This document shows, piece after piece, positions 1,463 through 31,547 of a stretch of 64,000 nucleotides of DNA (position 1 is the stretch's first letter; every line of letters starts with the position of its first letter). A model generated the notes under the pieces. The model was not told where the DNA came from. It saw only the letters and a list, made by a program, of their open reading frames with translations, and searched no databases. The DNA is from Schmidtea nova (Eukaryota): positions 413,168,001-413,232,000 of the forward strand of contig CM097883.1 of the NCBI GenBank assembly GCA_044892505.1, read 5' to 3'. The position numbers and the translations under genes were made by a program.

Positions 1463-1476
1463 AATAAAAAAATAAT

Positions 1477-4983: not shown

Positions 4984-5179
4984 CATTTGTATATACTTTA
5001 TTTTGTATTGGAATTCATCTAACTTATAACGCGAGATTATCACAATTACCAAAAAACAATAATAAATAAAATATTGACCTTATATAAAAAATGGTAAAAT
5101 CATAATCAAATTATAATTTATTATAATTTTAATATCAAAATAAAAATAAATTTCACAATTTTATTTAAAATTGAAAATG

Positions 5180-8100
5180 TTAATTGTCCAATGTAACTTG
5201 GAAGGGTTTGGAAAATGCTCTATCGCGTCCACTGACTGCTTCACAGTGATAAATGGCATCATCACCCGGTTTAAAATCATTGATAGTTAAAACGCTAACA
5301 ACACTGTCACAATTGTTTTTGATTTCTCCAATTTTCATTCTCGATTCATCCGGTAAACAATTCCAATTGAATCTCCACGTGACGGCGGGCAGTGGAAGAC
5401 CTGCTACTTCACAAGTCAATTTCACAGTGGTTCCCGACCTTGCTCTAACATCTTTCATCGAAGTGCTGATGATAATTGGTTTAGCTGGCACACAAAAACG
5501 AAAATGCGAAATCAATTCCAAATGAAATAGACAAGAAAATATATTACCACAACCAATTTCATCTTCACCATTTCTACAGTCGGCAGTTCCATCACAGACA
5601 TAACCATAAGGCATCTTGTCACCATTGCTGCAAGTAAATTTCAAAGGTCTGCATTTGTCGGATGCTAGAAATATGTGAAAATATTTGATGGAATGACAAA
5701 AGCAAATTTAAACAATAAATTACCATCACAATGTTTTTCATCGAATCCATTTTTGCAGTCTTCTTCTCCATTGCAGGCCCAATCAATGTTGTATTTCTCA
5801 ACTGTGCTATTGCCGATGATTGGTCCACAAGCTTTCTGTACAGGGTCGCAAGAATCTAGATGGTTATTAATTGGTGGCCATTATTTTTATTTTAAAGCAA
5901 AAAAGTACTGCAATAAGATATATCTTCATCGGATCCATCTTTACAATCAACCACTCCATCACAGAATTTCTGATTGCTGACACATTCTCCACTCCTGCAG
6001 TAGCGATGGTTTGGTGGACAAATGTCTTGGACATTGATTGTAACGTAGGCAACTACTTCTCTAACTCCACAAGTCATCTGAAGTTGTTTGGCATCGATGT
6101 CGATTCCAAATGGAGCAACTAAACGAATTCTTGATGGTCCGACTTTTGAAATTTGAAATCTTTTATCCTTAGATACGAGAGATCCATTGAGAAATCTGAG
6201 ACTTGGTTCTCCAACAGGGGTTCCAACTTTGTCTTGAGTGAAACATTCAAATTCAAACTTTTGACGCTTTCGTACATTGAGAACTGGAGGGCTGACCTTG
6301 GCAACAAATGGTCCTGCAAAGGCAAAGTGAAATATAAAATAAAGGATTATATGTATATGAAATTACTGAATCGTTTCTCAACAATGAACTCGGCTTGGGT
6401 TTCTTGACCAGATGGAATTGAGCAAATGAAATAACCATTGTCTTCCATTTCTGCTGAATCGGTTCCAATGAAACTAGTCCTATCGGCTACATGTCCAGTA
6501 TAAGTAGTCCATCGTTTGTTTGGCATGGCGATTCTTTCTGATCCATCTTTTCTCACGAAATACCATTTGATGTCGGTATTTTTGACATTTGGAATGTTAT
6601 TGACTCGGCAGTGAAATTCACCAGGTTGACCTTCCAATCGTTTCTCAACAGCGGGAGAAATAGCCAACACTCCGTCATCTAGTAGGACACGAATAATCCA
6701 ACAATAACAATTGCTAAACAAGTTCATACCTTGAATGATGATGATGTTGACAGCTTTGGTGACATCACCTACTTGGCACTGATAATGTCCTTCATTTTTC
6801 ATTTGTGCATTGTTCAGAACGAGGATACTGACAAGTCTGCCATTGACTCGTGCAATGTTGAATTTGTTCAGGGAGTCTGGAGTAGATAATTCTTGGTTTT
6901 CGAACTTCCATTGAACATCTGATCCAGAATATTCACTGTCAGCAGAAATTTCACAATGCAGTTCTTTCTTTCTCGACACGATGACAGCGACTTGTGATCC
7001 GGCTCCTTCGATCAGTTCTACAGACGGGAAATTGAACTGGAAAATATAAATGCTGATCACATACCGACTTTAATTGGGACAAAGAATGATAGACGTTGAT
7101 AAGATTTGGCTTCTAATTCTACTTTCTGATTTCTTTGATCGAGTCCGACTATTTTACATTTGTACACTCCAAGCTTCGAACGGGCGAAACTGTCAAAGGT
7201 TATCGTTTGTTGATTGCTTTCCAACAGTTGATTGTCATGATACCAAGAATATTGAACTTGTTTCAGTTCTGGTGCCACTTGACATCGCATTGAGAACTTC
7301 TCATTCAAACGAAACTTTTGAGGATAAGGGGTGATTGTGATGGAATATGATGCATCTAAGGTGGTTGAGGAGGATTCAGCTGGATTGTCAAGCAAGCATC
7401 GTCAATGTATTAGTAACAATAGCAATGAGGAAATATACCAATAATGTTGACTGTTGAGATGAATGTTTTGCCTGATTTATGAGCTCTGTAATGACATTCG
7501 TATTGCCCGAATACCGATTCATCATTTATTGGGACTTGAATTGTGTCAGTCTTCGAGATTGTTCTTCCTTGGGAATCTATCCAATAATAAGAAAATCTTT
7601 CAGTCGATTGAGCCAATTTGAATCCGACACATTTCCTATGAATCAAGCCGTTGATTGTCAGTTTCTCGGAAGCTAGGATCTGTATTTGAACGGTTGGTAC
7701 TAAATGTTGACAAATAATTAGCATGGTTGAATATTCAACCAAATTTACCTGCAATCCTTAGAATGACATCTTTTCTGAAGACCTGGGTCGGTTGAGTTTT
7801 GTGAACAATGGCACAAGTGTATGTGTTTTCGTGTTGTTTCTTCAAAACTGATTCGATAAATAACCGTTCATTATTTGATATGACATATCCATCAGATTTG
7901 ATCCATTGTGCATCGTATTCGTTCCTTGACCAGTTCGTGACTGAGCATTCAATATCGAGATCTTGTGTTTCTTGCAGTGTGATAGTGTTGTGACTTCCAT
8001 CGAGTTGAGAAATGACAATGTTAGGAATGTTTTCTTGTTCCACAATTACTTGATCTAAAATGTGGAAAATATATAATAATTTCCGGATTTCTTTTGCGAT

Positions 8101-8435
8101 TTGTTACCTTGTTCAGTTATGGTGGACTTTTCTCCAGCAATCAATCCCGATTCTATTTTTTCACTTGATCTACAGACATATTTCCCAACATCTTTCAATT
8201 GAACATTTTTCAAATATAATTCTCGACCTTTGCCAATGATGACATTATTTCGTTCCCAATGTATATCAATGATATTTCTTTCATTTTCAGCAGAACACAA
8301 TAATTTGATATCTGAACCGATTCGAACCGTTTCAATTTTCAGTGGAGTTGGTTTCGTTTCAGGCTGACATGAATATATAGAAATCAACATGAAACAAAAC
8401 AGCAATTTCCATGATTGAACTTTGATGTCAAACAT
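5180..8435 (-). CDS. Secreted Ig(7)-LDLa(3)-Ig perlecan-like protein, copy A (10 exons, 922 aa predicted)
   Basis: Exons 8435-8108, 8054-7749, 7699-7439, 7379-7065, 7017-6730, 6678-6367, 6313-5909, 5855-5724, 5664-5548, 5484-5180. All introns are GT-AG and phase 1; no stops or frameshifts seen. Confidence 0.88.
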
Positions 8436-8922
8436 TATCAATGAATGAATGATGATATGAATTGATTACAGAAACAATTTCTTTTATAGTAGTTGCTGAT
8501 AGTGGGAATGTGAAACTATCAGTGATTTGATTGGATAATGTCACACATTACAATAGTTGACGCATACAAATTACAAACACAGCAATGAAAATGAATTTTG
8601 TCATTTTTTAAATATTTCTTACTTATTTTTATATATTTTATTCGAATGTAAAGTTTTAAAATAATGAAAATAATAACAACTCATTTAGAATAATAATAAT
8701 AATTATTCTGATAATAATATTATTTTAAGATAATAAAATTCACCGTTTATATTTCGGTTGGATTTGACCCACCTGTATAACCGGCATATAAGTAGAAGTT
8801 GATTTGATGTTCGTTCAAAATGGTGAAATAGTTTTGTGAATATTTACAGTTTTTATTCCATCTTTTCAAGTCTTTGATGTCGTTATGCTAATTATCTTTC
8901 ATTTCCATTGGAACTATATATA

Positions 8923-9277
8923 CAGGGGTGTGTTGCCAATGACTTAACAACCGACTCGCTAATAAAAAACAAACATTTTTTTATTTATTATATTGAAATA
9001 AGATTATACATATAATGCACTAAGCATACATTTATATAAACTGTATAACAGAGGAAGATGAAGTAGGCATATGAAGCCTTTATTAATGCATTCATATAAG
9101 CTCCATATACCTTATTCATTTCCTGAAAACGACTTCTCGACCCTTTTTTTCACTATCGTCTCCGTTGCCAGTCTATGACTTTCATTTATCCACGACTTTA
9201 CCATCTGCGAAATAATTTAACAACTGGCTCGGCGATTTTCCAAAATTTTAACAACCGGCTCGTGCGAGCCAGTGCGA
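8923..9277. mobile_element. Partial hAT-type MITE inside the inverted arm (mirror at 11842-12196)
   Basis: Starts CAGGGGTGTGTTGCCAATGACTTAACAACCG with repeated TTAACAAC(C/T)GG motifs. The other end is not visible; the element is absent from copy C. Confidence 0.5.
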
Positions 9278-9479
9278 NNNNNNNNNNNNNNNNNNNNNNN
9301 NNNNNNNNNNNNNNNNNNNNNNNNNNNNNNNNNNNNNNNNNNNNNNNNNNNNNNNNNNNNNNNNNNNNNNNNNNNNNNNNNNNNNNNNNNNNNNNNNNNN
9401 NNNNNNNNNNNNNNNNNNNNNNNNNNNNNNNNNNNNNNNNNNNNNNNNNNNNNNNNNNNNNNNNNNNNNNNNNNNNNNN
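9278..9479. other. Assembly gap (202 N)
   Basis: Run of N. Confidence 1.
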
Positions 9480-10479
9480 CAACAGGATCAATCTATAACG
9501 CACCAAAGATTGGTCGACCGAGAACTGTTGTAACACTAGGAAATGAAAAGATTGTCTCGACCGCATCAAAACACAGAGCTTCCATTGAATTAGGTATTCC
9601 CTGCACATCTTTGAGTCGTATGATGAAAAATTTGGGCTTGAAAATGTATCACTCAAGATTAATCCACGGATTATTAGAAGATGATCCGGATCACCGGTTA
9701 CAATTCTGCGAGAAAATTTTGAACGAAGAAGAGCAACAAAATGCTATCCTAGAAAAAATTGTTGGTCCGATGAAGCAAATTTTAAGCTTTTAGGCGCTGT
9801 TAATAGGCATAACTGTGCCTATTATACCACGGAAAATCCGCATATCACAAATGAAGAACAGTTAAATCAACCTGGGGTTACAGTTTGGGCAAGCATTTCA
9901 TGGAAAGGGTTATTGGACCTTTCTTTTTCCATAAAACTGTGACACATGGCCTGTATCTAAATCTCTTGAGAGATACTGTTATCCCACAAATACGGCAGAA
10001 GTTTGATAATGAAGAATTCTATTTTCAGCAGGATGGAGCTCCTCCTCACTATGCAACAGCAGTGCGTCAATTTCTTGACAAAGAATTTCCTCATAGATAA
10101 ATAGGTCGATGAGGGTCAATTGAATTGCCACCGAGGTCACCTGATCTCACTCCAATGGATTTCTTCTTTTGGGGTATTATCAAAAATAAAGTTTTTTTAA
10201 AAGAGCCACGCACCATTGATGACATGATTAAATTTATAAAAGAAGCATGCAAAGAAATAGACAATAATGAAGAACTCTGTGCAAAGGTTTGTCTCAGTGT
10301 GAAGAAAAGGCTACAAGATGTATCTGTGTTGAAGGCAAACAATTTGAACACATCAGAAACTGTATATAATTTGAATTTATTGTTTAGTTTTTCATGGTTT
10401 CATAATAAATCCTAATTGTGACTTTAAAAACTATTTTTTAGAATAATAATTACTGTATACTTACTTTTGGACCACCCTG
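9480..10479 (+). mobile_element. Degenerate Tc1/mariner-superfamily transposon, DD41D (rosa-like); 5' end lost in the gap
   Basis: Broken frames give [15 protein letters not shown] and LPPRSPDLTPMDFFFWG, with 41 residues between the second and third D. Right end CTTACTTTTGGACCACCCTG followed by TA. Confidence 0.88.
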
Positions 10480-10483
10480 TATA

Positions 10484-10487
<4 letters not shown>

Positions 10488-10541
<54 letters not shown>

Positions 10542-10549
10542 TATATATA
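10488..10549. repeat. (TA)n microsatellite
   Basis: Direct reading. Confidence 0.95.
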
Positions 10550-12683
10550 AATTCATACGATAAATTATTATTATTATTAATATCTCTTATTTTGACCTTT
10601 GATAATTTATATTCATAAATTTTTATTTTTCTATAATTTATTTTTCAAAGTAAGAATACCCCTCTTCTATCGAGTTCCTTCACTTTAATGGATGTTTTCC
10701 AGATATTAAAGAAAGAAATTGGAAATTTTTTATTTTTTCACTTGAAGATGAAATGAGGTTTACTGGTTCCACCTGTTCATCATACATAGGATATCATCAT
10801 AGTTAAACTGTTAACCAGAGACCAGATTCGTTTACAATATCGCTCTGATTTACTGTTCAGTGATTAAATCTTTTATATTCCGATTCTTAAATTTTAAGTT
10901 TTGTGCTAGATTCCGTTCAGTTCAGGTTTTTGTTCTTTTTCTAAGTTTTGTTCTCTTAAATAATTTCTTCGATCTGGTAAAGTAAGTTTTCTGGGTTACT
11001 TGGTAATCTAACTCTTACTCACTCCTAGTAACCGCTATATCAATGCGATTTAACCATATTGCTTCCCGTCGCGTACCAACGTTGGTGCTGTACCAAATGA
11101 GTGAATATCCGCAAAAGCTGAGCACTGTTTCAGGACTATAATTGACCGGATATCATGTTTTGGTTTAAGTGCTACTGACAGAAGGTATAATGCCCATTTC
11201 TATGTTCCTTCAATTTCTATAAGAATCATATCAGTACATTTGTACTAATCTTCGAAAATTATTCTGTAAGTCTAAGCAATGAATTAATATCAATCAATAA
11301 GCAATATTTTCTAACTTCGAATAATCGAATCATCGAACTTACGAATAAATTCTTAAAAAAAAGGAGCCCATGAAAACAAGTTTTTAATGCAACTCTTTCG
11401 TTTTCTAATGTTCTCGGTTAATTTTACTGTTGTTTCATTGTTTGGTAGTTTCTTGGCAACAGTAAATTGAAAAATCACATTGTTTCAAAATTTTTCAATT
11501 TTTCAATGGAATAATTTGTGGGCCACCACGAGTCTGCTCGCAAATCTTCAGGTCGATTGGATATCGGGAAGTGGGTTAAAAATCAATCCAAAGTTTGACA
11601 AGAAAACAAACAGAAATTGGAAGTTAAGAAAGAGTTAAATAAGATCAGGATCAGTATATTCACGATCGCGCAAATCTTATCTAAATATTCTTGCTATTTC
11701 TGCAAAAGAACTAGTCGTTCTAAGATTGATTCGTACTCCTCAATCGTAATCTTTAACGGATAAAATATCTCATTACTCCCTCTGGTCCTAATAGTTAATA
11801 TGTTTTGTAGGCTAAAACTAGTTAAAATATTGCTCGCTAGATCGCACTGGCTCGCACGAGCCGGTTGTTAAAATTTTGGAAAATCGCCGAGCCAGTTGTT
11901 AAATTATTTCGCAGATGGTAAAGTCGTGGATAAATGAAAGTCATAGACTGGCAACGGAGACGATAGTGAAAAAAAGGGTCGAGAAGTCGTTTTCAGGAAA
12001 TGAATAAGGTATATGGAGCTTATATGAATGCATTAATAAAGGCTTCATATGCCTACTTCATCTTCCTCTGTTATACAGTTTATATAAATGTATGCTTAGT
12101 GCATTATATGTATAATCTTATTTCAATATAATAAATAAAAAAATGTTTGTTTTTTATTAGCGAGTCGGTTGTTAAGTCATTGGCAACACACCCCTGTATA
12201 TATAGTTCCAATGGAAATGAAAGATAATTAGCATAACGACATCAAAGACTTGAAAAGATGGAATAAAAACTGTAAATATTCACAAAACTATTTCACCATT
12301 TTGAACGAACATCAAATCAACTTCTACTTATATGCCGGTTATACAGGTGGGTCAAATCCAACCGAAATATAAACGGTGAATTTTATTATCTTAAAATAAT
12401 ATTATTATCAGAATAATTATTATTATTATTCTAAATGAGTTGTTATTATTTTCATTATTTTAAAACTTTACATTCGAATAAAATATATAAAAATAAGTAA
12501 GAAATATTTAAAAAATGACAAAATTCATTTTCATTGCTGTGTTTGTAATTTGTATGCGTCAACTATTGTAATGTGTGACATTATCCAATCAAATCACTGA
12601 TAGTTTCACATTCCCACTATCAGCAACTACTATAAAAGAAATTGTTTCTGTAATCAATTCATATCATCATTCATTCATTGATA

Positions 12684-15600
12684 ATGTTTGACATCAAAGT
12701 TCAATCATGGAAATTGCTGTTTTGTTTCATGTTGATTTCTATATATTCATGTCAGCCTGAAACGAAACCAACTCCACTGAAAATTGAAACGGTTCGAATC
12801 GGTTCAGATATCAAATTATTGTGTTCTGCTGAAAATGAAAGAAATATCATTGATATACATTGGGAACGAAATAATGTCATCATTGGCAAAGGTCGAGAAT
12901 TATATTTGAAAAATGTTCAATTGAAAGATGTTGGGAAATATGTCTGTAGATCAAGTGAAAAAATAGAATCGGGATTGATTGCTGGAGAAAAGTCCACCAT
13001 AACTGAACAAGGTAACAAATCGCAAAAGAAATCCGGAAATTATTATATATTTTCCACATTTTAGATCAAGTAATTGTGGAACAAGAAAACATTCCTAACA
13101 TTGTCATTTCTCAACTCGATGGAAGTCACAACACTATCACACTGCAAGAAACACAAGATCTCGATATTGAATGCTCAGTCACGAACTGGTCAAGGAACGA
13201 ATACGATGCACAATGGATCAAATCTGATGGATATGTCATATCAAATAATGAACGGTTATTTATCGAATCAGTTTTGAAGAAACAACACGAAAACACATAC
13301 ACTTGTGCCATTGTTCACAAAACTCAACCGACCCAGGTCTTCAGAAAAGATGTCATTCTAAGGATTGCAGGTAAAATTGAATGAATATTCAACCATGCTA
13401 ATCATTTGTCAACATTTAGTACCAATCGTTCAAATACAGATCCTAGCTTCCGAGAAACTGACAATCAACGGCTTGATTCATAGGAAATGTGTCGGATTCA
13501 AATTGGCTCAATCGACTGAAAGATTTTCTTATTATTGGATAGATTCCCAAGGAAGAACAATCTCGAAGACTGACACAATTCAAGTCCCAATAAATGATGA
13601 ATCGGTATTCGGGCAATACGAATGTCATTACAGAGCTCATAAATCAGGCAAAACATTCATCTCAACAGTCAACATTATTGGTATATTTCCTCATTTCTAT
13701 TGTTACTAATACATTGACGATGCTTGCTTGACAATCCAGCTGAATCCTCCTCAACCACCTTAGATGCATCATATTCCATCACAATCACCCCTTATCCTCA
13801 AAAGTTTCGTTTGAATGAGAAGTTCTCAATGCGATGTCAAGTGGCACCAGAACTGAAACAAGTTCAATATTCTTGGTATCATGACAATCAACTGTTGGAA
13901 AGCAATCAACAAACGATAACCTTTGACAGTTTCGCCCGTTCGAAGCTTGGAGTGTACAAATGTAAAATAGTCGGACTGGATCAAAGAAATCAGAAAGTAG
14001 AATTAGAAGCCAAATCTTATCAACGTCTATCATTCTTTGTCCCAATTAAAGTCGGTATGTGATCAGCATTTATATTTTCCAGTTCAATTTACCGTCTGTA
14101 GAACTGATCGAAGGAGCCGGATCACAAGTCGCTGTCATCGTGTCGAGAAAGAAAGAACTGCATTGTGAAATTTCTGCTGACAGTGAATATTCTGGATCAG
14201 ATGTTCAATGGAAGTTCGAAAACCAAGAATTATCTACTCCAGACTCCCTGAACAAATTCAACATTGCACGAGTCAATGGCAGACTTGTCAGTATCCTCGT
14301 TCTGAACAATGCACAAATGAAAAATGAAGGACATTATCAGTGCCAAGTAGGTGATGTCACCAAAGCTGTCAACATCATCATCATTCAAGGTATGAACTTG
14401 TTTAGCAATTGTTACTGTTGGATTATTCTTGTCCTACTAGATGACGGAGTGTTGGCTATTTCTCCCGCTGTTGAGAAACGATTGGAAGGTCAACCTGGTG
14501 AATTTCACTGCCGAGTCAATAACATTCCAAATGTCAAAAATACCGACATCAAATGGTATTTCGTGAGAAAAGATGGATCTGAAAGAATCGCCATGCCAAA
14601 CAAACGATGGACTACTTATACTGGACATGTAGCCGATAGGACTAGTTTCATTGGAACCGATTCAGCAGAAATGGAAGACAATGGTTATTTCATTTGCTCA
14701 ATTCCATCTGGTCAAGAAACCCAAGCCGAGTTCATTGTTGAGAAACGATTCAGTAATTTCATACACATAATCCTTTATTTTATATTTCACTTTGCCTTTG
14801 CAGGACCATTTGTTGCCAAGGTCAGCCCTCCAGTTCTCAATGTACGAAAGCGTCAAAAGTTTGAATTCGAATGTTTCACTCAAGACAAAGTTGGAACCCC
14901 TGTTGGAGAACCAAGTCTCAGATTTCTCAATGGATCTCTCGTATCTAAGGATAAAAGATTTCAAATTTCAAAAGTCGGACCATCAAGAATTCGTTTAGTT
15001 GCTCCATTTGGAATTGACATCGATGCCAAACAACTTCAGATGACTTGTGGAGTTAGAGAAGTAGTTGCCTACGTTACAATCAATGTCCAAGACATTTGTC
15101 CACCAAACCATCGCTACTGCAGGAGTGGAGAATGTGTCAGCAATCAGAAATTCTGTGATGGAGTGGTTGATTGTAAAGATGGATCCGATGAAGATATATC
15201 TTATTGCAGTACTACTTTGCATAATAATAATAATAATGGCCACCAATTAATAACCATCTAGATTCTTGCGACCCTGTACAGAGAGCTTGTGGACCAATCA
15301 TCGGTAATAGCACAGTTGAGAAATACAACATTGATTGGGCCTGCAATGGAGAAGAAGACTGCAAAAATGGATTCGATGAAAAACATTGTGATGGTAATTT
15401 ATTGTTTAAATTTGCTTTTGTCATTCCATCAAATATTTTCATATATTTCTAGCATCCGACAAATGCAGACCTTTGAAATTTACTTGCAGCAATGGTGACA
15501 AGATGCCTTATGGTTATGTCTGTGATGGAACTGCCGACTGTAGAAATGGTGAAGATGAAATTGGTTGTGGTAATATATTTTCTTGTCTATTTCATTTGGA

Positions 15601-15937
15601 ATTGATTTCGCATTTTCGTTTTTGTGTGCCAGCTAAACCAATTATCATCAGCACTTCGATGAAAGATGTTAGAGCAAGGTCGGGAACCACTGTGAAATTG
15701 ACTTGTGAAGTAGCAGGTCTTCCACTGCCCGCCGTCACGTGGAGATTCAATTGGAATTGTTTACCGGATGAATCGAGAATGAAAATTGGAGAAATCAAAA
15801 ACAATTGTGACAGTGTTGTTAGCGTTTTAACTATCAATGATTTTAAACCGGGTGATGATGCCATTTATCACTGTGAAGCCGTCAGTGGACGCGATAGAGC
15901 ATTTTCCAAACCCTTCCAAGTTACATTGGACAATTAA
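12684..15937 (+). CDS. Secreted Ig(7)-LDLa(3)-Ig perlecan-like protein, copy B (10 exons, 922 aa predicted)
   Basis: Exons 12684-13011, 13065-13370, 13420-13680, 13740-14054, 14102-14389, 14441-14752, 14804-15208, 15262-15393, 15453-15569, 15633-15937 total 2769 nt (923 codons with stop). Signal-like [23 protein letters not shown]; Ig C..W..Y-x-C motifs; LDLa [13 protein letters not shown]; last Ig has TWRFNW and YHCEA. Confidence 0.9.
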
Positions 15938-15951
15938 CATTTTCAATTTTA

Positions 15952-15957
15952 AATAAA
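15952..15957 (+). promoter_or_regulatory. Polyadenylation signal AATAAA of copy B (conserved in A and C)
   Basis: AATAAA about 15 nt after the TAA stop in all three copies. Confidence 0.6.
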
Positions 15958-17580
15958 ATTGTGAAATTTTTTTTTATTTTGATGACAACATTTTATTCAG
16001 TTTTTATTTTATAATATAATTTTATATAATTATTATTTAATTATACAATTTACATATAATGGGTGTAATGTTACATATTGAAAAGACTGCCCGTTATTTT
16101 TGTACTCGAGTTCTTAAAATAAATTAATTAAATCTATTGTTGGGCTGGTAAAAGCAAAATTAATTATCTGTTTTATCGAGTCAAAAATAAATGTATAAAA
16201 ATAGGTATATTCAAAACTCACGAAAATGAGAAATAGCACTAAGTAGTTACAATCATAAACTATTGGGAAATTAAAATATTAGAGCACAAGAGAATATCAA
16301 CTCGAAAATAGTGTCGGGATTTTATAAAATAAGCTCAAATAAAAAAATAAAAAGCACAAAAACTCGATAAAAATCAATAAAACTATAATCATTCTAAAAG
16401 TAATAATTAAACTAATAAAATTAATTAAAATTTAAAAATATAGTTTTAGCGGGGGAAATTGGTATGGAAGTATGTCAAATTGTGAGACGAATCCAAAAAT
16501 GGTAAAATCAAAATAATGGGGCTCCTCAGAAGAATAGAATTAAAAAATTAATTTATTAAAATTTAATTGGCTAATGAAAAACTCGAGCCAATGGATAACT
16601 CGAGTAGGTGCGAAGCACGGAGGATCAGCAAAATAGTTAATTTTCCCCGGGAAATTTGATTTTAAAGGAAACTTGAAAAATCCAATTGATAGGAAAACAA
16701 TTAACAATTTTATGATAATTAATTAGATTAGGAAGTGTCAACTTGAGACGCACCCACCAGACACCCTAATCAGATAGGAAAAAAATCATCAAGCTGGACA
16801 ATATAAAAAGAAGAGACATATTCCAAAGTTTTCTTGAGTGGAGGAAAATAAATGTTAGTAAATATTTACAAGACGAGAGGTTGAGAATCAGTAGTATTTT
16901 GAATCAAATTAATTCTTATTATCGTATCAGAAAGAGAGATCTGATTTATCCTTCCGCTTAATCAGAAAAGCAGAGAGAATAGAAGTTGTTAAAATTGTGT
17001 AAAAAGACTTATTATTATCAAAGATTGTGTCAAATAGTTGGTGTAAATACTTTCGAATAAATTTTACTGTATTAGGTATTCTTGAGTCAATTCAAAAGGA
17101 ACACTAAGGAGTCAGATAAACAGCACCTACTAATTGTTAAATACCCTTCAAAAATAGCATACAAACCGATTTCATAAGTCGGTCCATGTAGTGGTAAAAC
17201 GATAGAAAAAAAAGAAAACACACAATTTGATTACAGGTCGAATTTCCATATGGTGGACCACAAGAAAATTGAATGGGTAATAACCATTGTATAAAAATAA
17301 TACCAAAATAGAGAGAATAATTTATAAAAGATTATAGAAAGAAATACCCATTAAAATATCATTAAAATCATAGAAATAAGAATAAAAATTAAATTAAATT
17401 TGATTAGATTTGATTGTTTTGACCAATCTTTAACGAGCAGTAACACATCTTTTAGCAAATAATATAGAAATAGCTAGAAAATAAATTAAATGAATAGAAA
17501 ATTAATATAATCGAATAAATTGCAAAATGAATCATTTATCGAGTAAACATGCACAGTTAAATTCTAATTAGTTATAATTT

Positions 17581-17795: not shown

Positions 17796-18119
17796 TATAA
17801 TTTTGGTGAGAAAATGCGTGGGCGTTTTAAAAATTAGTATAAATAGACGCTGAGAAATCAATAATTAACTTCGTATTTCTAGTCAACTTCTCACTTGTCA
17901 GCCAACGTTTTCTATTTTTCGTGACATTTTCGGAGCGCTGCTCAAAGTTTTTTTGGAAAAAGTTCAGTAACAAACAGGTATGATGTTATTTTTTATTGTA
18001 ATTTTGAAGGTTTTATTGCTATTTAATAAATATTATGAAGTACTCATTTGGTTTTTATTTATCGTTTTGTTAATATTACTCTGACTCAAATGTTCTGAAT
18101 TGAATGAGGCTGAAACTTT

Positions 18120-18970
18120 AATGTTCTTTCTTGGACTTCTGAGTTTCAGAGTTCACTCGGAACATATCATTAACAAAGAAATAATTCAAAGTGATAGAAA
18201 AGAGTCATCAAAGTTTTTCAAAAGACTAAAATGTATAAAGGTTTTGAGAAGCTTTTGAAGACCAACGAACTATTATCGAAAACTTATCAAAAATTACACA
18301 AAATAGCCAAGAGTGCTAGAGATATTAATGAGGATTTAATCAAAAGAAAATCATGTGGTATGATGAATGTGAAACCACGTTGTGCGGATTAAAAGAACAA
18401 CTTTTATCAAAATGTTTTGGACACTTATGTAAGCTTTGATGGAATTGGAGCAGTTTATCCCAAATAGATGACAGTAGACTTGAAAAAGTAATAGCTTTTG
18501 GATCACATGCAATGAATAAGCATGAATTAGGATGCTACATCACAATAAAAGAGCTTTTGTCAATATTTTACTTTACTCAACATTTTAAACATTATCTACG
18601 GAAAAAGATTTAAATTACGAACCGACCACAAAGCAATAACTTTCATGGTTAAAACTACAAAACCGATAAGTTAAGAAGTCTCGAAGTGATTTTTGAATAT
18701 CGTAAAGGTGACTATCATGGAAATGCATCTGCATTATCAAGAATTGAAAATCATTCAGATGATCCATGAAGATTCGAAGACTGAAAAATTGACAACAAAG
18801 ATTTTAGCTCTAATGCAAGCAACTTGTTCATTATGACAGAAGAACTCAATGGAGATTTCAGTCGTCTTCAGTTGCACCGGACAATGCACCACCTACGAAA
18901 CTTATGACACAGTCACGTGTTAGTGCACATTCAAACTTTTGCGTGTGTGTGCGATTCTCACAAATATAAA
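18120..18970 (+). mobile_element. Degenerate Ty3/Gypsy pol remnant (RT thumb, RNase H)
   Basis: Broken frames give LRSF..TNYYRKLIKNY, GIGAV...KVIAFGSH, KELLSIFY, LRTDHKAI and EYRKG..HGNASALSR. Confidence 0.75.
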
Positions 18971-19058
18971 CAAGAAGCGACAGGCCAAACCGGTTTGATA
19001 TTTTATTGCCTCAGTTAGTGTGCTTGCTTGTCTCACTGCCGAAGCATATTTGATAATA

Positions 19059-20159
19059 CACCGTATAACGATGACCAACATTTCCTATAATATTAAATTA
19101 AATTACACTATAGAAATTCAAAACACTCACCTGTGTGTTATCGGTGTGCTAACATTCATTAACATCCTTTATTATGTGGTAGACAAAAAGGATAGAAAAA
19201 TTTTGTAAACCACAAAAAGGCATTATATAGTATAAACTGCATGCAAACTTTTAATGGGTGCAAATCTAATCAATCACTAACATCCCGTAATAAATCTTAC
19301 GCACACAAAAAAATTTGATATTTTCTTCATTTTAATTATTTTTTTATCGATTTTTAAAATGAAATTAAAAGCAAAATCATTGAAAAAAAATATATTTCAA
19401 GAAGGCATATTTTAAGATGTCTTTTTCATTTAAAAATTAAATAATTTTTTATAGCAAATCCGATAATTCTGAAGGCTCCCAGTTAAGCTTTTGGGAAAAC
19501 AACCAGCTAAATTTGTAAATATTATTTTTTTTAATATATCATTAAATCAAAATTTTTATAGAATATCATTTAATGAATGGCAATCAAGTTCTACAGGGCT
19601 TGGTTTGGAAAGAAAAACTAGAAACAAAAGCTGAAAAAGTCAAAATCGTGAATGCCATGGAAAATGGGGAAAATTATTTTCAATTTGGTAGACTGTTAGG
19701 AATTACTAAAAACACAATAAAAGCAATAGTAGTTAAGTATAAAAAATTTGGCTTTAAATCAAAAGGGAAAATCGGTGGCAGCAAATCAAAGATTTCCGAA
19801 GGAAATGGAAACAAACTGTTAGATTATGTAGAAAAAAAATTATTTTTCAATCTAACAGAAATAAAAAATTACTTAAATACACAAAACTGTTCGATTTTTG
19901 AAAAATAGTCCAAAATGCTGCAAAAAAATAGTTATCTCTGGAGATTAATGTTATTAATGTAATAAAATAATAAATTTTACTTTAGTTACTTACTTTATGT
20001 GAATATTAATCCAATAAATTGTTGGCAAAAGGCTAAAAAATGATATTTAAATGATAAAATTAAGTAATTTTCTTACTTAAAACAAAGAAAATTCATGAGT
20101 AATCATGAATACGCACACCAACTAGCATTATAGAGGATGTTAGTCATCGTTATACGGTG
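19059..20159 (+). mobile_element. Non-autonomous IS630/Tc1-type element, 1101 bp
   Basis: TIRs CACCGTATAACGATGAC(C/T)AACAT with TA on both sides. ORF 19573-19908 resembles a Tc1-like N-terminal HTH; no DDE region remains. Confidence 0.8.
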
Positions 20160-20206
20160 TATGTACACGTGTTTTGTGCTTTTTGTATATTTACACTACT
20201 TCAAAG

Positions 20207-22660
20207 CAGCGGATAAGATGGGCTGATTTAGCTGAATCCAGGGGCCCGACATTTTTCAAGGGAGCCCAAACATATTTCACTGTATAATAGAGGTGTGCAA
20301 ATGTTTGTCTGAATCCCTGAAAATATCATAAATAAAATTATAAAATCTCATCTATTTTCACGAGAAAATGTCGAAGAGTTTGAAATACTAGAAACCATTA
20401 CCCATTTGTAATAAAATCTAAAATTCATATGCAGGAAAGAGGAAACCTAGCTAAAAATCAAAAAATAAATTTCGTATTAGTTTGCTAAAATTGCGAATAT
20501 AGAACTTTGACATAATGTTGTATAATTCAATAATTGAATTTGTAACTAACTACCAAGTTGCCTACCGTGTTACGAGTTACGACGCTTTGACAGGAGAGCG
20601 GTTTGACAGAAATTGGTTAAGCTATTCAAAAGCTAGTGGCCGTGTTTATTGTTTTGCATGCAGGTTGATGTCACAGACAGTGAGCAAGCTTACAACTGGC
20701 TTCAGTGATTGGAAGCATGCTCATGAAATGCTTTCGAGTCATGAAACCTCTAAGCAACATCTTGATGCAATAGCAGCACCAAGTGGTGGTAGTCATCCCT
20801 TTAAATCGACTTTAATCTTTCAACTTAATTTGAAAGTGAAGTCCAATATTGGTAAACAGTTCTTATAAGGATAGTAAGCGTTATACAATTTCTTTGTATT
20901 CGTGATCTTGCATTCCGTGGCAAGAATGAACTGCTAGGATAACTGAGCAATGGTACTACCTTGGAGTCAATTTAGCACATTTCTTGCAGAACATATCTGT
21001 CAACATGAAAATAAAGGATGTGGACATACGTCTTATATTTCCTCAACTATCTGTGAAGAAATTATTGAACTGATGGGTCAAAACGTATTGCCTGTTATTG
21101 TTGCTGAAATAAAATCTGCAAATTACTTCTCGATATCTGTAGACTCAACGTCATCTGTTATGCGCGCGTACCAGTTAACAGTGATCATCCGATATGTTGT
21201 ACAATATGGCCCTGTTTAGCGCTTCATCAAGTTCATACCGATGGGTTCACTGTATCAGAAATGGTCTAAATTATTCTTAATTTTTTGAAAGAAAATGACA
21301 TTCAAATTCAAGATTGCCGAGGACAGTCGTACGACAACGATGCAAATATGAGTGGGAAGTATAACTGAGTATAGGCTATTATTTGTAAGAAGTGTAATGT
21401 TGCTCATTATGTGCCGTGCACTGCTCATTCCCTTAAATAGGTTGGGAGAAGTGCAGCAGAAAGTTTTCCTGCTGCTGCCAGATTTTTTCCCTTCTGCAAA
21501 ATCTTTATACTTGGCTTGTTGCATCTGCTCATCTTTGGCAGGTACATAGAAAATACCTGAAAGGGTTACATGTTAACAAAGCCTTGTCTGACACAAGATG
21601 GTCAGCCCGACATGATACTGTAAGGTCTGTTAATAAATCATACAATGAGAATATTGAAGCACTGGAAGAATTGGCAACTGATGAAAGTCAGTCGCGTGAC
21701 AATAGACTTGAAGCATAAGGATTTCGGAAAACTCTTGAACAACTGGAAGTCACTATTTTACTTGAAAATTTGGACAATTTTAGAAAGATTTCAGAAAACG
21801 AATTTATCCCTTCAAGACCGGGACAATCTTTGAATTCAGCCATCTATTTGTTGAAATCTCTCCTTGAGTTTGTTAAAAGACAGCGTTCTGAATTTGATTC
21901 CTACGAAGAAAAACGAAAAAATTGTAGAGAAAGAGTATAAACAATCTTCAATATGATCACAAAAGAGAAAGTACCAATTTCATGAAGAGCCATCAGCGAA
22001 ACAGTATTTTCCCCCAAGACAAAAATTTAAGGTTGAGGTATTTCTGGTAATCATTGACAAACTCTCTTCAGCTCTCCAACATCTGTAAGATGCATATAAA
22101 GACATCCATGAGAAATATGGCTTTCTTACAAACTGAACTGAGCACAGCAATGACGCCATCCGAGGGAAGCAGCCAAGTTAATGGAAGAATATTCAAGTGA
22201 TTTTGAAAACTCATTTCCTTCAGAATTAGTATAATTTTCATAGCTCTTTAAGACAGTTATTGTCCAGCCACAGAGCCAGGGTCAGGGACAGGAAGAAGCA
22301 CAATGCGAACCTCAAAACACATGCACAAAGCTAAAGATGTTGCTGTTTTTGATTGAGATACAGTCCTTTCCGAATACCCATATCACACTTCGTATCTATG
22401 TCTCAATGATGACATCAAACTGCAGCCGATAGCGATCATTTTCAAAGTTAAAAAGAATAAAAAATGAAGTTAGAAATTTCATGGGACAACAAAGACTGAG
22501 TCTGCTCTCTCTAATGCTCATTGAAAGGGAAATTGTAAGCTCACTAAGCTATACTAACTTAATTGATAACTTCGTCATGAGAAAAGTTGACAAATGTGGG
22601 TTAAAGCTTGAAAAATATAATAATAAATATTTTAATGAAGTGTGGATTCATGTAACTTTA
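20207..22660 (+). mobile_element. Degenerate hAT transposase (ZMYM1/Tip100-like, TTF zinc finger plus DUF4371)
   Basis: RNWLSYSKASGRVYCFACRL, YFSISVDST...QLTVIIRYV, RGQSYDNDANMSG, SDTRWSARH, RSFSKLKRIKNEVRNFMGQQRLSLLSLM; many stops and frameshifts. Ends are approximate. Confidence 0.88.
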
Positions 22661-22769
22661 TATAAATAAAATTGACTTCTATTTAATTTTTTGTTTTACT
22701 ACACTCTACCTTGCAAGTTACAATCTTACATTGCTAATAGCAATCATTTTACTAAACCTCCAAGTTATG

Positions 22770-24045
22770 TGGAGGCAAACCTGAAGGCATGGGCCACCAG
22801 GCAGTTCTTTGTGGATTGGGTAAACCTGGTTTTTGGCCCTTCTCTTAAAAGATATCTACAGGAAAACGACCTACCCATGCAAGCCATTCTTGTCCTCAAC
22901 AATGCTCCTGATCACCCACTGAACCTCGAAGATGACAGCATCGAAGAGTTCAAGTTTATAAAAGTTCTTTACCTACCACCCAACACCTCTCCTATCCTGC
23001 AGCCCATGGACCAGCAGATGATTTCAAATTTAAAGAAACTGTGTATCATGCATCTGTTCCGGCGTTGTTTTGAGGTAACGTAGAACACAAACCTCACACT
23101 TCGAGAGTTCTGGAAGGTCCACTTTAACATCATAATATGCCTCAGAATTGTTGATCAGGCCTTACTGGGTGTTACAGCGAGAATCTTGGCCTTTGCTTGG
23201 AAGAAGTTGTGGCCTGAAACTGTAATTGAAAGGACCTTTGAAAGATTTGAACCCGAAGTATCAGTGGAGGATCGGATCGTGTCTCTGGAAAAATCCATGG
23301 GTCTGGAGGTGGATGAGAGAGACGTGAACGAGCTCGTCAAGTAGCACTCTCAGGAACTGACGACCGGGGAGTTACAAGAGTTACAGTTGCAGCAGCATAC
23401 GGAGGTTCTTCGGGAAATTATTTTCGAAGAGGAGCCAGAAAGGGAGATGGTTATCTCTAAAAGAGAGATCAAGGACATTTTGGGAAAGTGGGAGAGTGTT
23501 TCACAGTTCGTGGAAAAGAAACACCCCGAAAAGGCTGCAACTGGTTGTGCATCGGAGCTATTTAATGACCCTTGCCTAACTCATTTCCAAAACATTCTGA
23601 AAGAGAGAAAGAAACAAACCTCCTTCGACAGTTTATTTTGAAACGACTTGCAGGAGAAAGTGAGTAAAGCGTGGTAAAATGCAAAGACCAGTGGAGAGAA
23701 AAACAGTGACGAAAAGTAAGCGAAAGTTAGCGAAAGTTAGCGAAAGTAACACTTCCTCCAGCATCTTATGTAAGCTCAAGTCGTCTAATTTTTAAGGTAA
23801 ATACACTATATAAAACCAATCTATTTCTTTATATTCTCTTTTATTATTTTAATACAATATTTGTCATTTAACACTCAATAAATAAATTTTTCATATTCAA
23901 GAACACGTAACAAAAACAACTGAAGTGCGATTTCGGGGGCTGAAACGGATTATTGGCATTTCAATAAATTTCAATGGAGAAAAATGCTTCAATATACGAG
24001 CAAGGTTAACGGAACGAATTAAACTAGTTTGTCGATATACCACTA
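22770..24045 (+). mobile_element. 3' half of a Tigger (pogo) transposon
   Basis: ORF 22691-23083 has KAWATRQFFVDW, AILVLNNAPDHP and LPPNTSPILQPMDQQMISNLK. Right end GAATTAAACTAGTTTGTCGATATACCACT followed by a TA run. Confidence 0.88.
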
Positions 24046-24182
24046 TATATATATATATATAATTATTAATTATTAGCTTACTTACTTACTACCAAAAGTA
24101 GATTATAAATATATTATATAAATAATTTTTAATTTACAGCGTTACAAACAGACAGACAGACGAATTTGTATCATTATTATAA

Positions 24183-24210
24183 ACTAGGCTTTATCCCGTG
24201 CTAGCACGGG
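24183..24210 (-). mobile_element. Helitron-like 3' terminus
   Basis: On the minus strand, the 16-bp palindrome CCCGTGCTAGCACGGG is followed 7 nt later by CTAG then T. Confidence 0.5.
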
Positions 24211-24229
24211 TAAATAGTTTGAATACTTA

Positions 24230-24377
24230 AAGCCTTGTCACTGTATGTATGTGTCTGTAACGCTGATAATAAATCAACTTAATAAATTTATTTTAATAAA
24301 TTTCAATTTTAATCTACTTACTATAGTAAGTAGACTGTCTAATGTGGTCAGCGTTACAGACACATACAGTGAGAAGG

Positions 24378-24380
<3 letters not shown>
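24230..24380. mobile_element. 151-bp MITE with about 33-bp TIRs, abutting (TA)n at 24381-24445
   Basis: AAGCCTTGTCACTGTATG(TATG)TGTCTGTAACGCTGA versus TCAGCGTTACAGACACATACAGTGAGAAGGCTT. Internal 20-bp palindrome at 24314-24333. Confidence 0.7.
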
Positions 24381-24455
<75 letters not shown>

Positions 24456-25722
24456 ATATAAAAAATGTTTGAATTTAATTATTACACATTTACTATCAGC
24501 CTCGTATTTACTTATAGTATTTTATATGTATTCTTATTGCATATGTTTCACATAAGTAACCCTGGTACGACATATATTCGTACTCACTTGAAGAGACAAA
24601 ATTTATTAAAAAATTTCAAATTTAATTAAGGACTTCTTTAATTTATTAAACAGAAAAGGCAATGCTAGAAAAACAAATAATTTTTGTTGTTTTTTAATTA
24701 ATTTATAAATATATTTTAGGCGTTTTTCGCTGTTTATTTAGTCTGTCAACAACGCCTATATGAATTATCCCCAACAAAATGTTAACACTTCCTTTGCAGG
24801 ATTAACGGCTACAAGACCTTTTACAGAATTTTTTATGCTTACCGAAATTGTCTTCAAAGATTTATTCTGATTAAAATTATTTCCAGATTCGTTGCAGATG
24901 GAGGTTAGTTAAAATAACTTGCATAACATTCAGTTGCGCAATGACTGTTATAGGCTGATGTCAGCATGTAAAAAGTCAAATGTTATTAGCATGTTTGACA
25001 TCAGATTTTACAAAATTTTTCAAATTACCATCGCGTTATGATTGCAACAATTTTATGAGAAAATAGCAAAATAATAAAAAACTTTTTTAAACCATTTTTT
25101 AAGGAACAATTATCAAACACCATTACCAAAGAGAAATTTGAATACAGGAAAAGAAGTTCACCTAAAACAGATTTTGGAAAGAGAGACAAAGAAAAAAGTT
25201 AGAGAAAAGGGGTAAAAAGTCCACAAGAAGTCACTGAAAAAAACAAGAAATAATTCAATGCAGATTATTATATCATTTATTCCACGATCTAATTGCCGTG
25301 GGTTTTGTTTCATTTATCAATGTTCTAGGGGTAATCTGGTAGAAATAAAACCAGTAAAAAAGTGCTGAACAAATATAGGATTTTAAAAATTCAGACAAAA
25401 TTAGCAAAATAGACAAGAACTTTCTTAAATAATTATGAAAATGATTCAAAATCACCACACTGGTCCAATTTACTTTTCGTAATATACAATAAGATTGTTA
25501 TAGAAAACAAACAATACTCTAGAACAGGGGTTTCCAATCTTTTTATGGTACCATACCTGTACGTTGTAAGCAACTTGATGACGTACTGGTAGACAAAATA
25601 TTTGGAAATAGGAAATAAAATCCAATAGAGAACATTTGTAAAAAAAGATTTTCATTTATAAGTGTTTTTTGCAAATTATAAAAATTTATTTATAATCATT
25701 TTCATAAAAAAAGTGTAAAATG

Positions 25723-25830
25723 ATATCAATAATTTCCATAATGGTTTTACCATTGTCTTACCATTATGGAAATTATTGATATTAATATTAAAAAGAGATC
25801 AAAGGGGAAAAAAAGATAATTATGATAAAG
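25723..25830 (+). mobile_element. Fold-back hairpin family copy 3
   Basis: 23-bp perfect arms 25723-25745 / 25760-25782 with a 14-nt spacer, then the family tail. Confidence 0.7.
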
Positions 25831-25914
25831 TATTTACGTCTATATTGTAATAAAATTTATCTGAAATCTAATTAAAAATAAAGTTTAACAAACAAAAAAA
25901 CATTAATAGATGAA

Positions 25915-28900
25915 AAAGACTTGCAGAGATGAAATAAAAACTGTAAATATTCACAAAACTATTTCACCATTGTGAACGAAAATCAAATCAACTTCTACTT
26001 ATATGCCGGTTATACAGAGGGGTCAAATCTGCCCGAAATATGAACGGTGAATTTTATTATCTTAAAATAATATTATTATCAGAATAATTATTATTATTAT
26101 TCTAAATGAGTTGTTATTATTTTCATTATTTTAAAACTTTACATTCGAATAAAATATATAAAAATAAGTAAGAAATATTTAAAAAATGACAAAATTCATT
26201 TTCATTGCTGTGTTTGTAATTTGTATGCGTCAACTATTGTAATGTGTGACATTATCCAATCAAATCACTGATAGTTTCACATTCCCACTATCAGCAACTA
26301 CTATAAAAGAAATTGTTTCTGTAATCAATTCATATCATCATTCATTCATTGATAATGTTTGACATCAAAGTTCAATCATGGAAATTGCTGTTTTGTTTCA
26401 TGTTGATTTCTATATATTCATGTCAGCCTGAAACGAAACCAACTCCACTGAAAATTGAAACGGTTCGAATCGGTTCAGATATCAAATTATTGTGTTCTGC
26501 TGAAAATGAAAGAAATATCATTGATATACATTGGGAACGAAATAATGTCATCATTGGCAAAGGTCGAGAATTATATTTGAAAAATGTTCAATTGAAAGAT
26601 GTTGGGAAATATGTCTGTAGATCAAGTGAAAAAATAGAATCGGGATTGATTGCTGGAGAAAAGTCCACCATAACTGAACAAGGTAACAAATCGCAAAAGA
26701 AATCCGGAAATTATTATATATTTTCCACATTTTAGATCAAGTAATTGTGGAACAAGAAAACATTCCTAACATTGTCATTTCTCAACTCGATGGAAGTCAC
26801 AACACTATCACACTGCAAGAAACACAAGATCTCGATATTGAATGCTCAGTCACGAACTGGTCAAGGAACGAATACGATGCACAATGGATCAAATCTGATG
26901 GATATGTCATATCAAATAATGAACGGTTATTTATCGAATCAGTTTTGAAGAAACAACACGAAAACACATACACTTGTGCCATTGTTCACAAAACTCAACC
27001 GACCCAGGTCTTCAGAAAAGATGTCATTCTAAGGATTGCAGGTAAAATTGAATGAATATTCAACCATGCTAATCATTTGTCAACATTTAGTACCAACCGT
27101 TCAAATACAGATCCTAGCTTCCGAGAAACTGACAATCAACGGCTTGATTCATAGGAAATGTGTCGGATTCAAATTGGCTCAATCGACTGAAAGATTTTCT
27201 TATTATTGGATAGATTCCCAAGGAAGAACAATCTCGAAGACTGACACAATTCAAGTCCCAATAAATGATGAATCGGTATTCGGGCAATACGAATGTCATT
27301 ACAGAGCTCATAAATCAGGCAAAACATTCATCTCAACAGTCAACATTATTGGTATATTTTCTCATTGCTATTGTTACTAATACATTGACGATGCTTGCTT
27401 GACAATCCAGCTGAATCCTCCTCAACCACCTTAGATGCATCATATTCCATCACAATCACCCCTTATCCTCAAAAGTTCCGTTTGAATGAGAAGTTCTCAA
27501 TGCGATGTCAAGTGGCACCAGAACTGAAACAAGTTCAATATTCTTGGTATCATGACAATCAACTGTTGGAAAGCAATCAGCAAACGATAACCTTTGACAG
27601 TTTCACCCGTTCGAAGCTTGGAGTGTACAAATGTAAAATAGTCGGACTGGATCAACGAAATCAGAAAGTAGAATTAGAAGCCAAATCTTATCAACGTCTA
27701 TCATTCTTTGTCCCAATTAAAGTCGGTATGTGATCAGCATTTATATTTTCCAATTCAATTTCCCGTCTGTAGAACTGATCGAAGGAGCCGGATCACAAGT
27801 CGCTGTCATCGTGTCGAGAAAGAAAGAACTGCACTGTGAAATTTCTGCTGACAGTGAATATTCTGGATCAGATGTTCAATGGAAGTTCGAAAACCAAGAA
27901 TTATCTACTCCAGACTCCCTCAACAAATTCAACATTGCACGAGTCAATGGCAGACTTGTCAGTATCCTCGTTCTGAACAATGCACAAATGAAAAATGAAG
28001 GACATTATCAGTGCCAAGTAGGTGATGTCACCAAAGCTGTCAACATCATCATCATTCAAGGTATGAACTTGTTTAGCAATTGTTATTGTTGGATTATTCG
28101 TGTCCTACTAGATGACGGAGTGTTGGCTATTTCGCCCGCAGTTGAAAAACGATTGGAAGGTCAACCTGGTGAATTTCACTGCCGAGTCAATAACATTCCA
28201 AATGTCAAAAATACCGACATCAAATGGTATTTCGTGAGGAAAGATGGATCTGAAAGAATCGCCATGCCAAACAAACGATGGACTACTTATACTGGACATG
28301 TAGCCGATAGGACTAGTTTCATTGGAACCGATTCGGCAGAAATGGAAGACAATGGTTATTTCATTTGCTCAATTCCATCTGGTCAAGAAACCCAAGCCGA
28401 GTTCATTGTTGAGAAACGATTCAGTAATTTCATAAACATATAATCCTTTATTTTATATTTCACTTTGCCTTTGCAGGACCATTTGTTGCCAAGGTGAGCC
28501 CTCCTGTTCTCAATGTACGAAAGCGTCAAAAGTTTGAATTTGAATGTTTCACTCAAGACAAAGTTGGAACCCCTGTTGGAGAACCAAGTCTCAGATTTCT
28601 CAATGGATCTCTCGTATCTAAGGATAAAAGATTTCAAATTTCAAAAGTCGGACCATCAAGAATTCGTTTAGTTGCTCCATTTGGAATTGACATCGATGCC
28701 AAACAACTTCAGATGACTTGTGGAGTTAGAGAAGTAGTTGCCTACGTTACAATCAATGTCCAAGACATTTGTCCACCAAACCATCGCTACTGCAGGAGTG
28801 GAGAATGTGTCAGCAATCAGAAATTCTGTGATGGAGTGGTTGATTGTAAAGATGGATCCGATGAAGATATATCTTATTGCAGTACTACTTTGCATAATAA

Positions 28901-29783
28901 TAATAATGGTCACCAATTAATAACCATCTAGATTCTTGCGACCCTGTACAGAGAGCTTGTGGACCAATCATCGGCAATAGCACAGTTGAGAAATACAACA
29001 TTGATTGGGCCTGCAATGGAGAAGAAGACTGCAAAAATGGATTCGATGAAAAACATTGTGATGGTAATTTATTGTTTAAATTTGCTTTTGTCATTCCATC
29101 AAATATTTTCACATATTTCTAGCATCCGACAAATGCAGACCTTTGAAATTTACTTGTAGCAATGGTGACAAGATGCCTTATGGTTATGTCTGTGATGGAA
29201 CTGCCGACTGTAGAAATGGTGAAGATGAAATTGGTTGTGGTAATATATTTTATTGTCTATATCGTTTGGAATTGATGTCGCATTTTCTTTTTTGTGTGCC
29301 AGCTAAACCAATTATCATCAGCACTTCGATGAAAGATGTTAGAGCAAGGTCGGGAACCACTGTGAAATTGACTTGTGAAGTAGCAGGTCTTCCACTGCCC
29401 GCCGTCACGTGGAGATTCAATTGGAATTGTTTACCGGATGAATCGAGAATGAAAATTGGAGAAATCAAAAACAATTGTGACAGTGTTGTTAGCGTTTTAA
29501 CTATCAATGATTTTAAACCGGGTGATGATGCCATTTATCACTGTGAAGCCGTCAGTGGACGCGATAGAGCATTTTCCAAACCCTTCCAAGTTACATTGGA
29601 CAATTAACATTTTCAATTTTAAATAAAACTTTGAAATATATATTTTTATTTTGATGACAACATTTTATTCAGTTTTTATTTTATAATATAATTTTATATA
29701 ATTATTATTTAATTATACAATTTACATATAATTGGTGTAATGTCACATACGTTGAAAAGACTGCCCGTTATCTATGTACTCGA
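25915..29783 (+). repeat. Duplicated block C (direct repeat of 12244-16109)
   Basis: Homology starts at AAAGACTTG and ends at TGTACTCGA. Confidence 0.95.
26355..29607 (+). CDS. Secreted Ig(7)-LDLa(3)-Ig perlecan-like protein, copy C (10 exons, 922 aa predicted)
   Basis: Exons 26355-26682, 26736-27041, 27091-27351, 27411-27725, 27773-28060, 28112-28423, 28477-28881, 28932-29063, 29123-29239, 29303-29607. Splice sites and frame are intact. Confidence 0.88.

Positions 29784-31496: not shown

Positions 31497-31497
<1 letters not shown>

Positions 31498-31546
<49 letters not shown>
31498..31546. repeat. (TAA)n microsatellite
   Basis: Direct reading. Confidence 0.95.

Positions 31547-31547
<1 letters not shown>

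Follow-up and report, generated by a model that had tools for sequence, protein, structure and literature searches.

The stretch of DNA analysed here, hereafter the window, comprises 64,000 nucleotides (nt) of the genome of the planarian Schmidtea nova (assembly schNov1, GCA_044892505.1; C2:413168001-413232000, where C2 is chromosome 2). It contains three near-identical copies of a gene whose product, predicted to be secreted, is built of immunoglobulin-like (Ig) and LDLa modules. Copy A (5180..8435, minus strand) and copy B (12684..15937, plus strand) are arranged head to head, and copy C (26355..29607, plus strand) follows B in direct orientation. A previous sequence-only reading of the window had described the same gene as being present three times; this count stands for the window, but the genome as a whole contains five copies. 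We describe the structure of the gene and of its duplications, and we consider whether the copies are real and how they have remained so alike.

Results

The gene model was curated by hand for copy B, and the exon coordinates of copy A were mapped from it. In copy B, ten exons (12684-13011, 13065-13370, 13420-13680, 13740-14054, 14102-14389, 14441-14752, 14804-15208, 15262-15393, 15453-15569 and 15633-15937) extend from an ATG at 12684 to a stop codon at 15935-15937. The nine introns are 47-63 nt in length, and all are GT-AG introns in phase 1. Most exons encode one Ig-like or one LDLa module each, producing the symmetric 1-1 exon pattern that is typical of shuffled extracellular modules. Each of the five copies in the genome has a coding sequence (CDS) of 2769 nt that encodes 922 amino acids (aa) and has a single terminal stop, and 45 of 45 splice sites are GT..AG. 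Copies A, B and C all have open frames of 922 aa with an AATAAA located 15 nt past the stop codon, confirming that reading frames, splice sites and poly(A) signals are kept in all three copies of the window. Introns 2-4 are proven by dispersed intronless copies, which are described below, while introns 4-8 are confirmed by a spliced relative, the protein P0001, which matches the exon model. This protein (629 aa) was the only match among 5.8 billion proteins to a query consisting of the Ig part of the 536-aa reading frame of the dispersed element; its identity is 95% to the query fragment and, exon by exon, 76-89% to copy B. A search for contigs on record encoding either the 400-aa reading frame of B or P0001 found none, and a protein-atlas search returned generic Ig clusters only, with a score of 0.82.

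The 922-aa product starts with a hydrophobic leader (signal peptide) and has no other segment with the hydrophobicity of a membrane span; it is predicted to be a secreted protein without a membrane anchor. The order of modules is seven Ig-type cysteine pairs, 18 cysteines in three LDLa modules and a last Ig domain of the I-set. Domain searches were performed exon by exon, with the joined CDS being used only for counts. Pfam Ig domains were above the cut-off in exons 1, 4, 5 and 10 and weak in exons 2 and 6, with none detected in exon 3 or the first part of exon 7, and all three LDLa modules were above the cut-off. The last Ig domain is a generic I-set domain (E = 1.7e-12), whose best solved relative is DSCAM.

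The arrangement of the copies in the window was determined by self-BLAST and a repeat search. An inverted repeat containing A and B (5134-9277 against 11842-15983) aligns over 4144 nt at 99.35% identity, with 25 mismatches and one gap. B is also repeated directly as C (12244..16109 against 25915..29783, both on the plus strand), with an alignment of 3872 nt at 98.50% identity and an offset of 13,671 nt, and A and C match in inverted orientation (5134-8875 against 25915-29655) at 98.56% identity. An extra 402 nt of 5' flank (11842-12243) is common to B and A only and, separately, an extra 126 nt of 3' flank (15984-16109) is common to B and C only; hence, B is the hub of this geometry. The coordinates given in the sequence-only reading for the head-to-head pair, for the direct copy 13.67 kb downstream and for B as the hub were reproduced exactly. 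Its measurements of arms of about 4.1 kb around a 2.56-kb spacer were also borne out and could be refined by genome coordinates. Arm A (minus strand), visible in the window as 5134..9277, reaches 9283, 6 nt further, as a genome search with window 9480-12243 matched C2:413176876-413177283 (window 8876-9283); arm B (plus strand) spans 11836..15983. Each arm is 4150 nt and the spacer is 2552 nt, such that the total A-spacer-B structure is 10.85 kb.

The visible part of the spacer (9480..11835) begins with a dispersed repeat of about 1 kb (9480-10479), which is followed by a (TA)n tract (10480-10558) and then by a mostly unique part (10559-11835). No palindromicity was detected in the spacer apart from the (TA)n tract, and the genome search found no second copy of its unique part. 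The dispersed repeat, which ends in (TA)n (window 9480-10558), has more than 40 genomic copies at 92-95% identity; other copies have (TA)n on both sides, suggesting that this repeat inserts into (TA)n microsatellites. Four sequencing runs of one study contain 55-70% of the sampled words of window 10600-16500.

In the window, arm A ends at a run of N (9278..9479), and the sequence-only reading had cautioned that such a gap may indicate an allelic contig scaffolded in inverted orientation. This run is a mask over assembled sequence and not a scaffold gap, because locus L002 (C2:413171634-413178375) covers the run yet contains no N and because approximately ten genome-search matches to the (TA)n-rich stretch 10442-10552 sit at window 9289-9464, all within the run. 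The assembly therefore runs without interruption from A through the spacer into B. As the outer flank of A is also unique in the genome apart from a transposon, the caveat falls away. The run is 842 nt upstream of the ATG of A, outside any coding sequence, and so no reading frame crosses it.

A genome search identified two further full copies of the gene, E (C2:412666989-412670424, minus strand) and D (C2:412707675-412711119, plus strand), 460-505 kb upstream of the window copies. All five copies are found within 530 kb, and none was detected on unplaced contigs. E and D form a second head-to-head pair, with arms of about 5.6 kb that are 99.3-99.5% identical and a spacer of 37 kb. The 80 kb retrieved from this region contain no N, including between D and E, and have nothing in common with the window except the gene itself, with homology beginning about 190 nt ahead of the ATG and ending at the stop codon. 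A 558-nt partial copy located 2.3 kb downstream of D (L017:3396-3953; C2:412713396-412713953), made up of the final 227 nt of the CDS and 3' flank, is the remnant of a further rearranged copy. The 37-kb E-D spacer also holds a satellite with a 375-bp period and about 18 units that are 99% identical (L013-L014; C2:412675268-412682008). Distant paralogues of the Ig-plus-LDLa exon 7, with 30-67% protein identity, are present at C2:414204854-414205219, C2:439783957, C2:341994024, C1:185202481, C1:505825752 and C1:505651261; the nearest, C2:414204854-414205219, lies 1 Mb downstream and is broken by four stop codons. The five copies are thus the youngest clade of a larger lineage-specific family.

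As far as the flanks were searched, the sequence surrounding each copy is unique to that copy. The only part of the outer flank of A (window 1-5133) that recurs in the genome is a Pogo/Tigger-like DDE_1 transposon copy (3159..4995, plus strand; PF03184, E = 2.5e-33), one of many copies with about 90% identity, which ends 138 nt from the outer boundary of A. A comparison of this flank with those of B and C gave only one 81-nt match of 81% identity, which we judged to be uninformative, and there was nothing beside D or E. The 11 kb beyond C (window 29784-41000) are likewise single-copy in the genome, with the exception of a 1.1-kb repeat. The interval between B and C (16110..25914; 9.8 kb, no N) contains transposon-derived frames (HTH_SB, 19573-19908; DDE_1, 22691-23083). 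The copies of the gene share all nine introns and 48-848 nt of flank; because introns and flanks were copied, these are DNA-level duplicates and not retrocopies.

Exon divergence across the copies is 0.3-1.0%, and intron divergence, per aligned base, is 3.7-6.8% in every pair except D/E (0.6%). The dN/dS ratio (Nei-Gojobori) ranges from 0.03 to 0.18 in 10 of 10 pairs, and only three residues vary among A, B and C. All five copies are under purifying selection.

Differences between the copies are unevenly distributed. A and B are without a single difference over 11842-13375 (1534 nt; permutation p 0.0002), D and E over 14495-15812 (permutation p 0.005), and A, B and C are all identical over 12372..13375 in the coordinates of B (plus strand; 1004 nt; permutation p <0.0001); the longest identical tracts in the window copies are 1534, 1054 and 1004 nt (permutation p <=0.0002). 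We read 12372-13375 as a recent gene-conversion tract. The adjoining 5' edge of the B/C repeat (12244..12371, plus strand) contains 11 differences within 128 nt (8.6%), probably an older divergence that was left unconverted; the last 170 nt of this repeat are about 6% diverged and the interior about 1%. Within the A/B arms, the 1534 identical nt are next to the spacer and the remaining arm is about 1% diverged, with conversion involving C also being seen. With D/E as the outgroup, A and B share 7 derived sites, A and C share 3, and B and C share at least 7. No single tree fits A, B and C, because each of the three pairings is backed by several shared derived sites. A also has six private variants plus variants common only to C or only to D/E. 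The differences are distributed as expected from non-allelic gene conversion. Of the earlier proposal of a palindrome able to convert itself, what is upheld is conversion among the copies, as indicated by the identical tracts and the mosaic of shared variants.

At synonymous sites, C is as distant from A/B (0.026-0.030) as D/E are (0.025-0.028). Because of this equality, the repeat edges diverged by 6-9% and the introns diverged by 3.7-4.1%, the duplicates must be older than their average identity suggests, and the description of this amplification as recent could not be sustained.

A spliced fragment of the gene is found elsewhere in the genome. A stretch of exons 2-5 (13177..14263, plus strand) is carried by a dispersed repeat with introns 2-4 precisely removed, and this 932-nt fragment is present in at least 35 places, on all three chromosomes; the absence of introns 2-4 from these copies implies that the gene was transcribed and spliced. 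Exonic identity of the captured fragment to copy B is 97.6-98.6%, and 91.5% in a tandem array on C1. The dispersed repeat, as judged from a comparison of its copies, is retroelement-like. In one example, L021:3643-7716 (C1:487003643-487007716; others are in L006-L010, L019-L020 and L022), the fragment is directly after a 512-nt direct repeat (3643-4153 / 7205-7716, 99.0% identical) and a primer-binding-like motif starting with TGG; it lies within a 536-aa reading frame that also holds a fragment of ribosomal protein L6e, and a DUF7041 frame then follows. Most copies of the element are frameshifted. At 15 sites that vary among the genes, the fragment is closest to copy C (13/15), and it does not have three A/B-specific states; hence, capture occurred after the split between ABC and DE and before the A/B-specific changes. 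The captured fragment thereby provides a built-in time marker for this gene family. A diverged form of the element is arranged in tandem with a 6,313-bp period and at least 5 units at C1:94097110-94122806 (L019, L020).

Discussion

Our results suggest that this region contains a real local expansion of a gene family, with five intact paralogues on chromosome 2 that have been homogenised by gene conversion, and that an assembly error is probably not involved; we regard this explanation as probable. In these terms, the locus is a multi-copy gene cluster of an ordinary kind, palindromic in arrangement, whose members evolve in concert. The duplications would be older than the 98.5-99.35% identity suggests, and we infer that the copies have been kept alike by conversion and selection as opposed to having arisen in one recent amplification.

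The schNov1 assembly was generated by canu from HiFi reads, followed by purge_dups, SALSA2, manual Hi-C curation, arrow gap closing and DeepVariant polishing, for which one alignment per read was used (PMC11410931). With HiFi reads, canu assembles the haplotypes separately, and their removal by purge_dups is incomplete. One of the two copies in each inverted pair, or A by itself, could therefore be an uncollapsed haplotype or a misjoined piece, and the true copy number would then be lower. The differences between A and B (0.65%) and between D and E (about 0.5%) are like those of alleles, and the marks of false duplication given by Ko et al. 2022 (PMC9516828) include a gap between duplicates, such as the N run between A and B appears to be. 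However, this run is a mask and the assembly is continuous there, with no N between A and B (L002), between B and C, or between D and E. Moreover, A is inverted, its outer flank has no informative match beside B, C, D or E, and it has private variants as well as variants common only to C or only to D/E. A typical HiFi read is about 15-20 kb; the 10.85-kb A-spacer-B structure is shorter than this, which we also count against an artefact. An artefact is, hence, unlikely. The region resembles the heterotype false duplications of Ko et al. 2022 (PMC9516828) in having near-identical neighbours in a purged diploid long-read assembly and an apparent N run between A and B, but differs from them in its inverted orientation, its lack of a real gap or of duplicated flanks, and the uninterrupted sequence in which the other pairs lie.

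One recent burst of amplification without conversion, with all differences being ordinary mutations accumulated since a young duplication, would be in keeping with the mean identity of 98.5-99.35%, the intactness of all copies and the almost invariant protein. This explanation is improbable, as the B/C repeat begins with 128 nt at 8.6% divergence whereas 1.0-1.5 kb at the 5' end lack any difference (p <=0.0002), the support for all three pairings of A, B and C is not tree-like, and C is as far from A/B at synonymous sites as D/E are. If the 3.4-4.1 kb unit were the cargo of a self-copying mobile element, the copies would be expected to have common termini, but their end points differ (11836/15983, 12244/16109 and ~12490/15935) and no terminal repeats were found by BLAST or the repeat search, target-site duplications not having been checked. 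Transposon remains do adjoin the copies, namely the pogo-like element at 3159-4995, the transposon-derived frames between B and C and the dispersed repeat in the spacer; however, all copies are within 530 kb of one chromosome, and it is only the spliced fragment, not the gene, that is dispersed. Transport as mobile cargo is therefore very improbable.

A number of points weigh against a real, conversion-homogenised expansion. Residual haplotype duplication is known to occur in purged diploid canu assemblies, and the A/B and D/E divergences of 0.5-0.65% are within the allelic range. Polishing with single alignments could have blurred differences between paralogues, and consensus mixing is, in principle, another possible source of both the identical tracts and the mosaics. 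The copy number of five and the junctions are taken from the assembly sequence. Our explanation also does not account for the abruptness with which homology between D/E and A/B/C stops, on one side 185-196 nt ahead of the ATG and on the other at the stop codon. Two elements of this explanation are also conjectural. The benefit of the expansion would be an increased dose of a single, almost invariant binding protein that is secreted, and the inverted pair may have arisen by fold-back or template-switch repair near a hairpin-prone (TA)n tract. Tracts of (TA)n are prone to breakage and fold into hairpins. In genome coordinates, 5 nt separate the end of the A arm from the first of the (TA)n-rich matches, and a second (TA)n tract is present at 10480-10558. 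The other repeat boundaries have no terminal repeats or clear microhomology.

A more speculative extension, which we consider possible but doubtful, is that head-to-head pairs of the gene arose twice independently (A/B and E/D, whose spacers and flanks are unrelated) and that each pair is homogenised from arm to arm, making these pairs an analogue, outside the sex chromosomes, of sex-chromosome palindromes, perhaps seeded by fold-back repair at (TA)n. As in primate palindromes of the P1-P8 type, the inverted arms are >99% identical, flank a short unique spacer and carry a gene each, and the fully identical stretch beside the spacer is as expected from arm-to-arm conversion. The arms of primate sex-chromosome palindromes range from 9 kb to 1.45 Mb, with an arm identity of 99.9% or more. 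The planarian arms, at 4150 nt for A/B and about 5.6 kb for D/E, fall short of this minimum of about 9 kb; A/B arm identity is 99.35%, and the chromosome belongs to a hermaphrodite flatworm. A closer comparison may be made with tandem or segmental gene families in concerted evolution, in which, as here, introns and flanks are duplicated, a highly identical interior is bounded by more diverged edges, identical tracts and mosaic variants occur, and every copy is under purifying selection. Unlike such families, this one is small (five copies) and of mixed orientation, with two head-to-head pairs and one direct copy, and is known here from assembly sequence.

The nature of the protein can be considered by reference to perlecan (HSPG2 / UNC-52 / Trol). 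In domain II of perlecan, a cluster of LDLa modules is directly followed by an I-set Ig domain within a secreted protein, as in the planarian gene. However, only Ig and LDLa families were found by the exon-wise Pfam scans, with no SEA, laminin B, laminin-EGF or LamG domains, and the gene ends, with its stop codon and AATAAA, right after the last Ig domain. Seven Ig-like modules precede the LDLa cluster, and the five copies form a single clade within a lineage-specific family, more distant members of which are present elsewhere in this genome. Given the lack of laminin and LamG domains, this gene is not a perlecan orthologue.

In a reference planarian genome, these findings distinguish what is very probably a true gene-family expansion from the scaffolding error that had been suspected. 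That the copies look young would be due largely to gene conversion, which bears on the dating of duplications and the counting of gene gains in Schmidtea. The suggestion of a dosage role made in the sequence-only reading agrees with our results, in that near-identical proteins encoded by intact genes fit such a role. A lineage-specific secreted Ig/LDLa protein present at five near-identical copies is, judging from its sequence, a reasonable candidate for a dose-sensitive extracellular function.

Other features of the window

Scans of the window for tRNA genes and Rfam families gave no matches. A hairpin-forming stretch in the B-C interval (17581-17752, in 17561-17802) has a relative of about 90% identity, on both strands, at L018:6251-6509, near the distal gene pair; the stretch at 17561-17802 therefore belongs to a repeated element. 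A second N run, of 199 nt, is present at 50175-50373, and a DM9-repeat reading frame is found at 56477-56812 (minus strand). A single-exon BTG/Tob gene (38946-39797, plus strand; PF07742, E = 6e-27), which is apparently single-copy in the genome, lies downstream of copy C.

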